From: Adineta vaga
Lineage: Eukaryota; Animalia; Rotifera
Direction of reading: 5' to 3'
Length of the DNA stretch: 64,000 bases
Assembly: GCA_021613535.1 (NCBI GenBank)
Contig: CP075493.1
Coordinates: forward strand, 1,240,001 to 1,304,000
Shown piece by piece: positions 9-12,202 of the stretch; the stretch's first letter is position 1; each line of letters opens with the position of its first letter. A program made the position numbers and the translations under genes. The notes under the pieces are model-generated. The model saw only the letters and a program-made list of their open reading frames with translations. It was not told the DNA's origin and ran no database searches.

Positions 9-935
9 ATGATCGAACGATGTAAAAATCAAGCAGATTCTCATTGTTATCATTGTTCCCAAGATGTATGCACAAATCATGCAAATGAACATAAAACATG
101 GGTCGAAAAACAACTTTTACCTGTTGTTAATCGAGTTGATACAATGTATGATCATTGTCATCAAATTGAGAAAGATCAAACAATGTGTACACTTGATTAT
201 TTAAGTGATATTCGTGAACAAGTTGATCAATGGAAAACAGATTGTTATCAACAAATTGATACTATTTATGATCAAGTTCTAAGTCAAATTAAAAATATTT
301 TAGAAAAACATAAAACTGAAATAGTTGAAAGGGCAACAAATAATTTAGAATCAATCAAACAAATGCGGAATCAACTTGGACAATTATTAAAAGACGATAA
401 AATAGAATATCGATTGATAGAAAATATTACGGAAGAATTAGAAGAAATAAAACAAGTAGAACCAGAAATTAATCATCCAAATATTCGAATTTTCACTGAA
501 CAGCTGAATGTTGAAAATCTTGTTCGTGTCATTGATGAAACCAACTATCTCACTCGATCACTAGAAAGACAAGTAACACAAACAGTACCACTTATCTATA
601 AGTAACTTATTTATCATTAATTTTCAACATCATCTTTCTTTGTTCTTTCATTTGTTGTAGAAATTCTATTCGGTTTTCTTCACCTATTCATTCTGATGAA
701 GAACAGCTTCCAAGAGAACAAATAATAAAGAAATCCTACGCTCAGAAGTAAATATTTCATCTATAAGTTTGTAAAATTCTTCTAATGGTACTTTTATAGA
801 AAATCTGTTCGTCCATCATTACCTATTTCGAAAAAACCGATCGACAAAAGTCAAATGCATCGCAGAACATTTCCTAAATATAAATCTTATCATGATCGAA
901 TATCTCATCTAGATGAACATAACAAAAAGAAATAA
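9..935 (+). CDS. B-box-like zinc finger / coiled-coil protein (3 exons; the 5' end may extend beyond the window)
   Basis: ORF 9..605 begins with CKNQADSHCYHCSQDVCTNHANEH (B-box-like C/H pattern) followed by heptad-rich helices. GT-AG introns at about 602-660 and 748-799; stop TAA at 933-935. Confidence 0.6.
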
Positions 936-1107
936 TGAAAATAAATTTAGTTAACATCCATTTTCTCATTCAATCTTTTAAAATACACAATTTTTTCGAA
1001 AGCTCTTTTATTTTTTATATACTAGGTTATTGGAAACAATATTTTGATTGGGTGACAGTACTATAATTTCAAATAGAATTTTAGATGAGTTTTATAACAA
1101 ATGTGTA

Positions 1108-1180: not shown

Positions 1181-1492
1181 TAAGTGTCATCATTATTAGA
1201 TATTTTGAAAAAAATATTATTCAATCAATTTCAAAGTCTTTTTTTTTGCTATTTATTATGTATATATGTAGAATTCATCCTAGAGTCAAAAATCAATTAA
1301 AACAAAGAAATTATTTATCGCAAAGACGATAAAAGAAATTTGAATACAGGATAATGCAAAAATTTCTCCATCAAGTTCTTAATGAAATATGAAAAGAGCT
1401 TCACATCGTCACTCTTAAAGTTTTTAGATAAATTCACAAATGAAGGAACATTATTTATTCGGTAATGAAAAAACACTAAATTCATTAGATGA

Positions 1493-3185
1493 TTATTTAC
1501 GCGACCAAATGCGCATCCACATACCATATTTTGGTCTAAAAAAGATATGATAATATAAATATAGAAGTGTTCAATAAGAGAATAACATAACAAACCTAAT
1601 CGTAACAGCAATATCTGGTGCATGTTTTTGTCCAGGTACAAGTTCGAAGCGAAAATGTTTAATAATAAGAGCTAACATAATTTTTGCTTCTAACATTGCA
1701 AAATTTTGTCCAATACATGATCGAGGTCCTGAACTAAAAGCTAATACTTTATCTGCATTACTTTCTTCAAATCTTGATGGATTAAATTTATTTGGTTCAT
1801 GCCAATATTTTTCTGATCTATAAGTTACATTACAAAACTATAAAAATATTCAATGAAAATAATATCTTACCGATGTAAAATATTCAAATTGATTGCTATA
1901 TCTGTTCCTTTCTTTATATGAATTTGTTTTCCTTCGCTTGTCACAATTATATTGTCTACAACTGCTGTACGCAGCATTGTTGGCACAGGTTGATGAGTTC
2001 TTAATGTTTCTTTCAAAACCATTTCTGTATAAGTCAGAAGTGAAATAGTTGGGATATCTAATTCATCATTATTATCACTAAGAACAGAATCAACTTCAGT
2101 TTGACATCGTTGATAAACCTCTGGATGAGTTGCCAAATTATAAAGTGTCCATGCCATTAAAGTCGATGTTGTTTCATGTCCAGCCAGCACTATATATATA
2201 TATATATATATAAAAGATAAGTCAAATTGATTTGTAATAGAAAGAAAATCTTACCGAATGTAATTGCTTCATTTGATATTTCTTCTTGAGAAAATTTTTT
2301 TGTTTTTTCATCACCTTTTGTTGTTAAAAGTAGATCAAGTAAATCCGAACCTTTACATGTCGATTTTGTTAATCCATTCAATCGTTGATTGATAATATTT
2401 TGAATGACTTGTTGAATTTCTCGTCTTGATTTATCCATACGTCGCTTACCTGCTAATGGTAACTGATTAACAATTGGAATTAGACCGAGCATATTAAAAA
2501 TTCGTTTTTCCATTTCTTTTAATACGATATTCATATTTCGAAAGATTATTTCATGAACATTGTTATCTTCAATGATTTGTGTACCAAAAATACATCCAGT
2601 AACAATATCTAATGTAAGACCTGATAATTGTTCATGAATATCAAGTACTAACGGATCATTTGTTTCTTTATCATTTATCAATGTTGTCCATTTTTGTATA
2701 AACCGATTCGTTATTTGTGTCATTAAGGAAAACATTGAATTAATATTTTGATGTTGAAATACGGGAGCAATTAATCGTCGATGTCGTTTATGATCTTCAC
2801 CTTCAGCTAATAAAATATTTTCATAACCTAGTAAAGATGCAAGAATCGTTTGTCCTATTGAAGATTTATGATACGAATAAACATTTGTTTTCAAAACACC
2901 TTCAATTAATGATGGATCAGTTATAACAAGATGAGCTTTAGGACCAAATGAACTATGGTAACAATCACCATATTTCAAACTCATTTCTCTACTAAAAGAT
3001 AATGGATCATCAGCGAGAAATGCACGACGACGATTAAGAAGATCACCAATGATCGGTTTGTATTGACCTGGAATTCCTTGCTTCCAAAAATGTTGATGAA
3101 TAGACCATGGTTCAAGTATCCAAAAGGTAATCAATCGATAAATTATCAAGAAAAACAATCCAATCAAAATAAGAGAAACCAACAT
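1493..3185 (-). CDS. Cytochrome P450, plant CYP72-clan-like (4 exons)
   Basis: N-terminal TM anchor; I-helix TFVLAGHETT across intron 2190-2254; K-helix KETLR; heme motif FSSGPRSCIGQNFAMLEAK; further introns 1818-1870 and 1536-1595; ends ...PKYGMWMRIWSRK*. Confidence 0.95.
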
Positions 3186-3521
3186 GTTTATTGCTTCAAA
3201 AACTTTTAAACCAAGAATAAGTATTCATTTTTCTATCGACATGATGATGACAAATATTGTCCACGTGTTCGACAGAACGCAAAAGTAAATACGTGATATA
3301 CAAGTAGATCTTACACTTTACGAACATACTTAATCGATCTATTCGTCGCATGAAAATTCGAGTTATCTTTTCGACATGTTGTTCTAGAATATTGTAGAAA
3401 TTCTCAAAACAATCATTTCATGTGACTAATTTGCAAGTTAAACACTATTCGTATCTTATTATTGATTTTTATTTAAAATCTTCTGTATCATTATAGATTC
3501 ATATCGTTCTCGTCGTCAAAT

Positions 3522-4019
3522 ATGTCTGAAGAATTGAAGGATATTGTTGGAAAACATCTTCTATACAAATATGCAAATGGATGGCAATATGAAATATACA
3601 TTAAAAATAATACTACAATCGATTATCGAATTCATTCAGGTCTCGTTGGTGGTCGATGGGTGAAAGATCAACAAGTTCATTTAGTAAAGCTTTCATCAAC
3701 AACAGCTATTTTTAAATTTTCATGGACAGAACCTACCGGTACATCAGTTAGTTTGTCAATTAACTTGGATGAACGTCGTCTTCATGGTACAATATTTTTT
3801 CCTCGTTGGATTATCGATGAACCGCAGAAGACGGTCTGCTTTCAAAATGATCATCTCGACGAAATGCGTCAACATCGCGATCGTGGACCAACATATCCAA
3901 TAGAAGTTATCGATGAATTTGCTGACATTATATTTGTAGAAGATTGTAAAGAAAATGATGAAACAATAATTGCATGTGCACCATCACAATTGTCCAATGG
4001 ATGTACTAATCACGCGTAA
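3522..4019 (+). CDS. padC: Phenolic acid decarboxylase (bacterial PadC/PdcA type, cofactor-free), intronless
   Basis: [35 protein letters not shown], [25 protein letters not shown] and [11 protein letters not shown] follow Bacillus/Lactobacillus PAD closely. Tyr15, Tyr17, Arg45 and Glu70 sit at the catalytic positions. AATAAA at about 4113. Confidence 0.93.
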
Positions 4020-4227
4020 TGAAGATGATGATTTGCAAACTTCTCAAAATTAATCTAGTCATTCTCATATTTCTATTTCTCATTTTTTTCTTTCAAGAAA
4101 GAATTCATATTTAATAAAACAATCTATTTATTTGGTAATCACAATAACTGTACTTACTGATTTATTATCAATAAAAAAAATATCTAAATCGTTTTGAATG
4201 TTAGATAAAAAAATCTATACAATTAAA

Positions 4228-5153
4228 CTAGAACAGAGTTCTTTGAGAAAATAAAAGTACTGTTGGTGGAGATGGATTTGAATTCGATGCAGAAATTTCT
4301 GAAGATTGGTTATTATAAACTTGAATCGGTGGTGTTGCTGTTCCTATCAATGCTTGGTTTGCTTCTGTTAATAAAGCAAGACGATGTGTTGCAATAGCTT
4401 GAACAAATTCTGATGTTATTGTGGAAACAGGTGTTTGAGAAGTTGTAGACGTTGGAAATGTTTCCTAAAAATGAATCAGATGGAAATTCTTTTTTTTTTC
4501 ATAAGAAAAACTTTACTGTTGTTGGGTGTGATTTTATTCTTGATTGTTGCTCATTCGTTACACTATATTCATCAAATGCTGCGTTTATCTCACCTACAAG
4601 AAAATCAGTATTTGAATATTAACAACGAAACAAAGTTTGATTTTACCGTTTGGAAATGATTCAGATGGACTTTTAATTACAGAAATAGATGGAGAATTCT
4701 GAAGAAAAAAACAGAAGTTCTTGTTCGATTGAATAAGAATTAAGTTTTCTCTCTTACGATTTGATTGTAGACAATTGTTTCAGTATGTGGTCGAAAAGAG
4801 GGTCGATAAGATAAATGATGTTTCTTGTCGAGATACGATCGTCGATTGATATTCGATGGAAGATTTGAATCAAAAGAATCTAATCGACAAGAATCTCCTA
4901 AAACAAGATTTCTCTTCAAAGTCTTTCAAATAAAAAACCTAATGATTAATTTACTATTTGTTTTAAACCATAATTTTGTTAATCTTCGTCGATAACAAAT
5001 AATAAATGAAATTAATAAAACAAGTGATATTAATATTGGTAAAATAATTGAAAGAGTAATGATCAATATTTTGTTATGGTCAGTACTAGATTGACTAGTA
5101 GTTGTTTGTATCGTTTCATTCGTGAGTAAAAAAGATTGGTTTGTGTTATTCAT
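4228..5153 (-). CDS. Single-pass (type III-like) membrane protein of unknown function, multi-exon
   Basis: Short N-terminus with N-glycosylation sequons (NNT, NQS, NET), TM segment ILIITLSIILPILISLVLLISFIIC followed by YRRR. Several short GT-AG introns lead to a last exon ending ...SPPTVLLFSQRTLF* (4228-4230). Confidence 0.65.
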
Positions 5154-11512: not shown

Positions 11513-12202
11513 TTATATTCGAAATCGAATTAGGCAGCTACTTTAATTTGAGCGAATTCATCAATAGTATCTATACTGGATATGTTGGTCCACAGTCACG
11601 ATATTGATACATTTCATTGCGATGATCATTTTGAAAACATATCGTCTTTTTAGGTTCATCGACAGCTCGACGAGGAAAGAAAGTTGCATCATGAAGACGA
11701 CGTTCATCTAGATTAATTATCAAACTAACTGATGTACCCGTAGATTCAGTTCATGAAAGTTCATAGATAACTATTGATGATGCCCGAATGTATTCGATAA
11801 TCGGGTGTAGTATTATTTCAATTGAAAATAGTTGTTTTCAACTGAGTTCAAGTTTCTAGTTTAACATTAACATGTATGCGACATCAAAAGCAAATGAGTA
11901 ACATTATGGATATTGAGTTATTTGAAACAATGCAAATGAAATCCGAAAAAAGAAAAGTTTTATCTCGTCAATACATTTGTTCGAGTGTTCTTTTTGGCGA
12001 ATAGGTAATCTGGAAGATTGAAATACATCTTGGTTTAGTCTCCAAGAGATATTGGAGCGTTGGATCATCAGATGTCGTTAGTGTCTCGAAAAATAATAAT
12101 AAAAGAAAATTAAAATAGAAAAAAATTCTTTTTATGTAATAAAAAATAAAAACTACCTCAATAATTTTGAATTTAATGAACAACGAACGTCGAATCTCGT
12201 TG

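Follow-up and report, generated by a model that had tools for sequence, protein, structure and literature searches.

The window analysed here is a 64,000-nucleotide stretch of chromosome 1 of the bdelloid rotifer Adineta vaga (contig CP075493.1, positions 1,240,001-1,304,000; the assembly, GCA_021613535.1, has six contigs and 100.8 Mb). Near its start, 1.24 Mb into the 18-Mb chromosome, a cytochrome P450 gene on the minus strand and a phenolic acid decarboxylase (PAD) gene on the plus strand lie head-to-head, separated by a spacer at 3186-3521 (coordinates are those of the window unless otherwise indicated). A preliminary description of the sequence had proposed two intact, divergently oriented enzyme genes in an animal, with 336 bp between their start codons; both the gene arrangement and the distance are confirmed, and the animal is indeed a bdelloid, as that description had guessed.

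The PAD coding sequence (3522-4019, plus strand) is an intronless, uninterrupted open reading frame (ORF) encoding 165 amino acids plus the stop. The protein belongs to Pfam family PF05870 over its full length (E = 9.6e-79; residues 5-162 on positions 1-156 of the 158 in the profile), and its best matches among solved structures are PADs (258 bits). Residues Y15, Y17, Y35, R45, E70, T72 and T74 correspond to Tyr11, Tyr13, Tyr31, Arg41, Glu64, Thr66 and Thr68 of Bacillus subtilis PAD, based on HMMER coordinates mapped to structure 4ALB and on the motifs LLYKY, DYR, GGRW and WTEPTGT. In B. subtilis, this residue set binds the p-hydroxyl and carboxylate groups and performs the decarboxylation (PMC10915792). 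The full catalytic set is retained in A. vaga PAD, and the enzyme looks functional as judged from these residues. It would act as in bacteria, removing CO2 from p-coumaric, ferulic and caffeic acids without a cofactor and yielding 4-vinylphenols. By analogy with the bacterial members of the family, it is quite likely that PAD helps an animal living among moss, litter and microbes cope with hydroxycinnamic acids.

The P450 gene extends on the minus strand from an ATG at 3185 to a stop ending at 1493 and comprises four exons and 504 codons; its GT-AG introns of 65, 53 and 60 bp were placed by reading the sequence. Exon 1 (2255-3185; RNA piece 2255-3189) encodes the N-terminal membrane anchor and the helices up to the I-helix (PF00067, E = 3.9e-29, profile positions 6-270). 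Exon 2 (1871-2189; PF00067, E = 1.5e-28) encodes the I-helix and the ExxR motif, with an RNA piece covering 1871-2179 and the remaining 10 nucleotides (2180-2189) masked as a TA repeat. Exon 3 (1596-1817), bounded by RNA joints at 1817>1871 and 1535>1596, encodes the PxRF motif and the haem loop (Cys codon at 1715-1717), and the translation of exon 4, which includes the stop (1493-1535), matches the C-terminus of the Adineta ricciae orthologue (P0122). The P450 hallmarks FxxGxRxCxG, (A/G)Gx(D/E)T(T/S), ExxR and PxRF are all present, as FSSGPRSCIG, AGHETT, ETLR and PSRF, respectively. RNA contigs reach 1312-1318 or beyond, defining a 3' untranslated region (UTR) at 1312-1492. The hydrophobic N-terminal anchor would place the protein in the membrane of the endoplasmic reticulum. 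At 417 aa, the deposited A. vaga model (P0121, I4U23_000299) covers only exons 1 and 2 and has no haem-binding cysteine. According to the RNA contigs and the A. ricciae orthologue, two further exons follow, giving 504 codons in all; the truncation is an annotation error, and the gene itself is not broken. In the analyses below the P450 exons were searched singly; wherever a whole protein was required, for searches or for trees, the full-length A. ricciae orthologue, 77% identical in exon 1, was used.

RNA evidence consisted of assembled contigs over 1300-4300 from four runs, representing three studies. One contig per run spans the P450 gene from about 1312 to 3185-3189, skipping 1536-1595, 1818-1870 and the remaining intron, between exons 1 and 2; since all three introns are skipped, these contigs are RNA, and they confirm the gene model. 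The PAD transcript (3495-4144, plus strand) is represented by a separate, unspliced contig that has its 5' end at 3495-3497 in all four runs and its 3' end at 4058 or further, and transcript contigs from the four runs give zero coverage of spacer positions 3190-3494. Transcripts of the two genes occur in the same RNA libraries. The 5' ends of the PAD contigs (4/4 runs) lie at or just after an AG at 3495-3496, downstream of a pyrimidine-rich stretch. This AG fits a candidate spliced-leader trans-splice acceptor; no spliced-leader letters were seen on the PAD contigs.

PAD is regarded as a bacterial enzyme. After the window itself, the closest matches to A. vaga PAD are A. ricciae proteins (79% identity; UniProt name phenolic acid decarboxylase), followed by metagenome proteins (70-76%) and then named bacteria (60-68%). 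A scan with one genome per prokaryotic species recovered Acidobacteriaceae and Alphaproteobacteria at 63-67% identity, then Myxococcota and Actinomycetota. None of the 120 best matches came from Rotaria, Didymodactylos or A. steineri. The metagenome PADs with 70-76% identity are encoded on AT-rich contigs (30-33% G+C), beside ubiquitin-domain genes whose family also occurs in A. vaga at 41-45% identity, and we read these contigs, from their sequence features, as other bdelloids. In a maximum likelihood tree the 15 AT-rich PADs (A. vaga, A. ricciae and metagenome) form one clade with weak support (74 in the Shimodaira-Hasegawa-like approximate likelihood ratio test, SH-aLRT), and the backbone is a polytomy, so that the donor is pinned only to ‘soil bacteria’. 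The G+C content of PAD is 35%, compared with 47-63% for the nearest bacterial PAD genes and 29% for the window. With non-metazoan nearest relatives outside the bdelloids in these searches, integration among host genes and expression, the PAD gene is a horizontal acquisition from bacteria. The foreign, bacterial-type PAD of the preliminary description is supported both by the 63-67% identity to PADs of soil bacteria and by the host-gene surroundings. The bacterial gene would have entered a bdelloid ancestor and then taken on the host base composition.

Additional PAD sequences were found in A. vaga and in metagenome data. A decayed second copy (11565-11783, minus strand), 8 kb from the intact gene, has 63% identity to PAD residues 58-130; this pseudogene fragment has one TGA and one TAG as well as an internal deletion, and is evidence of an old local duplication. 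Two near-identical PAD-like genes encoding 177 aa are also present on chromosome 1 (C1:432712-433191, L002 1462-1995; C1:276835-277314, L003). They are 48-49% identical to the window PAD and sit on a very long branch; His and Cys stand in place of the two phenol-binding tyrosines and Phe in place of Tyr31, with Arg41 and Glu64 kept. These substitutions may reflect a changed function or a separate origin, and neither gene (at 276,835 and 432,712) has a P450 of the window P450’s family beside it. One metagenome contig (L021 1-14026; 33% G+C) contains four tandem repeats with a period of about 3.47 kb, each unit consisting of a PAD gene (75% identical to the window PAD), a gene encoding 227 aa, and a ubiquitin-domain gene; about a dozen members of the 227-aa family are present in A. 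vaga.

The P450 belongs to a bdelloid-wide family. Every named sequence among the 120 best matches to exon 1 is from a bdelloid (Adineta, Rotaria or Didymodactylos), and at least 12 more members, with 30-39% identity, are encoded in A. vaga as single uninterrupted ORFs of 517-549 aa. Such intronless paralogues (e.g., C5:12989092-12990615, C3:4443556-4445070, C3:5647103-5648569, C6:1037757-1039274) are unusual for animal P450 genes and bear on the origin of the family. Within the subfamily studied here, intron positions are common to the paralogues on chromosomes 4 and 6 and to Rotaria. The A. ricciae gene (L017 8049-9653) does not have intron 2 (1818-1870 in the window), which is present in A. 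vaga and Rotaria sordida; this pattern indicates a recent intron loss.

Searches with phmmer, using the A. ricciae orthologue as query and scoring single domains, gave 250-350 bits for eukaryotic metagenome proteins, 185-235 for bacteria-sized P450s, 190-205 for plant CYP709B, 143-174 for other members of the plant CYP72 clan, 168 for CYP97A3, 150 for human CYP3A4, 125-145 for oomycete domains, 137 for P450 BM3, 132 for CYP4B1 and 93-105 for arthropod domains. Plant CYP72-clan P450s (CYP709B, CYP734A, CYP72A, CYP749A) rank with the best named matches, at 143-205 bits and about 30% identity, and resemble the bdelloid P450 in length and N-terminal layout, but the scores for CYP97A3 and CYP3A4 are comparable, and the plant, bacterial and vertebrate scores lie close together. 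Long top matches from beetle, tick, oomycete, chytrid and plant were rejected as nearest relatives, being multi-P450 gene models with single domains of 93-156 bits. Most names recovered with a profile of the nearest relatives belonged to the plant CYP72 clan, a language-model search placed the P450 nearest arthropod CYP9-like (CYP3-clan) clusters, and cluster look-ups yielded mostly metagenome proteins. Contigs of the metagenome P450 relatives carry eukaryotic genes (Patched, Dzip-like, FNIP repeats, GH32); an origin of these contigs from close bdelloids was ruled out, as the neighbouring genes are only 35-54% identical to those of A. vaga.

A 68-row P450 tree (quick IQ-TREE with SH-aLRT only, without curated CYP3/CYP4 clan references or monogonont rotifer sequences) groups the bdelloid family with eukaryotic metagenome clades and a chytrid, and a split with 99% SH-aLRT separates this group from the plant, bacterial, oomycete and arthropod rows. 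The plant CYP72-clan rows form a 98% clade with one protist, in which the bdelloid family is not nested. With regard to nesting within metazoan CYP3/CYP4, the four arthropod domains available in the tree do not group with the bdelloid P450. The label ‘plant-like’ given to this P450 in the preliminary description thus describes sequence resemblance well enough, but not descent, as the family is not part of the plant CYP72 clan in this tree. It is possible that the whole P450 family is of non-animal origin; given that an intron-conserving subfamily spans Adineta, Rotaria and Didymodactylos, any such transfer would have been ancient and unconnected with PAD.

Linkage of the two genes is shared with A. 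ricciae, in which P450(-)/PAD(+) occurs twice in tandem on one contig (CAJNOJ010000123, L017) and once in a second assembly (L018), with P450-PAD spacers of about 340-347 bp. The order B-box-like gene, P450, PAD is kept, and P450-PAD has been duplicated as one unit. The first gene of this trio, a putative B-box-like gene (9-979, plus strand) recognized by eye from its Cys/His-rich motifs (a Pfam search gave no match), anchors the synteny with A. ricciae: L017 3681-4497 aligns by tblastx to window positions 138-979 with up to 67% identity. Downstream of PAD, A. ricciae differs entirely and synteny is lost, so the trio has survived rearrangement close by. The neighbours of PAD in A. vaga include the intron-bearing P450 and a cyclin gene. 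When metagenomes were scanned for further PAD-P450 pairs, two additional AT-rich PAD contigs turned up, with zero P450. Among the loci examined the pair was confined to Adineta, so it arose in that lineage. Of 80 bacterial PAD loci only one, in Streptomyces minutiscleroticus (L086 930-3468), has a clear P450 gene (27% identical to the rotifer P450) less than 3 kb from PAD.

The spacer between the start codons includes a block of about 140 bp (3228-3367) that aligns locally with A. ricciae and is a candidate promoter or regulatory element. The alignment score is 49, versus 21.8±2.6 in dinucleotide shuffles (0/300 reach 49). Identity between A. vaga and A. ricciae is 80-93% in coding sequence, 70% across 3225-3375, and 47-49% in UTRs and downstream DNA, the last being the background level for AT-rich sequence. 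The block is on the P450 side of the spacer, spanning 43-182 bp upstream of that gene's start codon, and searches of the DNA preceding the Rotaria orthologue and the A. vaga paralogues gave no match to it. Two motifs to which the preliminary description had drawn attention, CACGTG at 3262-3267 and TCATGTGA at 3418-3425, are present at those positions. Neither is conserved in A. ricciae, both fall outside the conserved columns, and CACGTG occurs in the window at chance frequency (5 observed, 4.75 expected); the E-box and TCATGTGA were accordingly rejected as shared control motifs.

Three other explanations of the locus were weighed. High identity to bacterial PADs and the absence of an intron could point to bacterial contamination or misassembly as the source of PAD, but there is hardly any chance that this is correct, and we reject it on the basis of chromosome context, composition, A. 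ricciae synteny and RNA: the gene lies 1.24 Mb into an 18-Mb chromosome, with animal genes that contain introns on either side; its AT-rich composition is that of the host; two A. ricciae assemblies show the same arrangement; RNA contigs of three studies include it; and there is a decayed copy at a distance of 8 kb. Its position among ordinary animal genes argues for horizontal transfer rather than contamination. The preliminary description went further and supposed that both genes are foreign, each with a donor of its own, and that the plant-like P450 and the bacterial PAD were joined as a co-regulated mini-cluster. The intronless state of most A. vaga family members (at least 12, with ORFs of 517-549 aa), the higher scores of plant CYP709B (190-205 bits) and bacterial P450s (185-235) relative to CYP3A4 (150) and arthropod domains (about 100), and the mostly CYP72-clan names recovered with the relative-built profile would all be in keeping with such an origin. 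We nevertheless consider it improbable, since the 99% SH-aLRT split sets the bdelloid family apart from the plant CYP72 clan, bacteria, oomycetes and arthropods, the subfamily with conserved introns spans three bdelloid genera (Adineta, Rotaria, Didymodactylos), and the language-model search led to arthropod CYP9-like clusters; the tree on which part of this argument depends contains neither a curated CYP3/CYP4 reference set nor a monogonont rotifer sequence. Of the two supposed foreign genes, PAD stands; for the P450, a member of a bdelloid-wide family, a plant or recent foreign origin is unsupported.

The third explanation is that the two genes are chance neighbours, PAD detoxifying alone as it does in bacteria, the P450 acting on an unrelated substrate, and the pair persisting through the closeness of the species, with each gene under its own promoter. 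We regard this as a real possibility, and several results that weigh against a working partnership fit it well. The AT-rich bdelloid-like contigs carry PAD beside ubiquitin-domain genes, with this P450 absent, so PAD does not need this P450. Conversely, there is no PAD within 10 kb of the R. sordida P450 orthologue (P0126, 60% identical), and none near the A. steineri family member examined. The expectation that the pair would be linked in related species is accordingly borne out in A. ricciae, where it is kept and duplicated, but not at the R. sordida orthologue or on the other PAD-bearing bdelloid-like contigs. A comparison with homoeologous regions, also suggested in the preliminary description, lent no support: the loci of the nearest A. 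vaga paralogues, on chromosomes 4 and 6, have only the P450 in common with the window, with no PAD and no shared flanking genes. In bacteria, a P450 lies within 3 kb of PAD at just 1-2 of 80 loci, and in a compact genome a short distance between head-to-head genes is nothing unusual. The conserved block could be the P450’s own promoter, given its location in the P450-proximal half, and the spacer of the other A. ricciae copy (pair 1) scores 24, a value equalled or exceeded by 53/300 shuffles and without significance under the same harsh scoring. The same RNA libraries contain both transcripts, but contig depth is no measure of level and thus shows transcription, not co-expression. Against mere chance stand this joint presence in the libraries, the duplication of the whole unit in A. 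ricciae and the survival of the unit despite the loss of adjacent downstream synteny.

Taking these results together, we find it somewhat probable that a bacterial PAD gene was acquired by a bdelloid ancestor and was paired, in Adineta, with a resident P450. In the Adineta lineage, PAD would have come to lie head-to-head with a membrane-anchored P450 of the bdelloid-wide family. The P450 would be driven from the same spacer and would either act on the PAD product, by oxidation of the vinyl group or the ring, or supply the PAD substrate. Functional coupling of this kind is suggested by position, the conserved spacer and duplication as a unit, and we put it forward as doubtful. Somewhat more doubtful still is a two-step Adineta pathway from hydroxycinnamic acids through vinylphenols to oxidised products, serving detoxification or yielding a bioactive metabolite and selected as a unit; selection of this kind would explain the tandem duplication in A. 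ricciae.

The A. vaga PAD shares its full-length Pfam family, size and catalytic set with bacterial PADs (PadC/PDC; B. subtilis 2P8G/4ALB, Enterobacter 3NX1, L. plantarum 2GC9), from which it differs in its location in an animal chromosome, its host base composition and its transcription from a eukaryotic spacer. A PadR-type regulator was not seen. The fern Ceratopteris richardii acquired PADs from bacteria and has 26 tandem copies (PMC9477723). As in Ceratopteris, a bacterial PAD moved into a eukaryote and was then duplicated in tandem (in A. ricciae and on metagenome contig L021), but in Adineta the recipient is an animal, copy number is low and a P450 is part of the duplicated unit. Bdelloids possess horizontally acquired genes, among them expressed biosynthetic clusters, and a P450 flanks one foreign cluster (Nowell et al. 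2024, PMC11258130). The A. vaga PAD is likewise an expressed foreign metabolic gene in a distal part of a chromosome with a P450 alongside, but the Adineta pair consists of two divergent genes rather than a non-ribosomal peptide synthetase or polyketide synthase cluster. No PAD entry was found in the text and supplements of that study, which concerns the response of bdelloids to pathogens (PMC11258130). The searchable literature contained no paper connecting PAD with rotifers, and the fern was the sole eukaryotic PAD acquisition found there (PMC9477723).

The known class to which this locus belongs is that of bdelloid horizontally acquired genes; PAD is a new member of it, and the neighbour relationship with the P450 is interesting but unproven. 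Foreign metabolic genes in bdelloids are known by the thousand, and because they are already so numerous the value of the present one is modest. An expressed and, to judge from its residues, catalytically intact animal PAD is nonetheless a concrete and easily assayed addition to the bdelloid foreign-gene catalogue, and it suggests how bdelloids handle plant-litter phenolics. If the P450 is indeed coupled to PAD, the pair would provide a small example of an animal building a pathway from a foreign and a resident gene.

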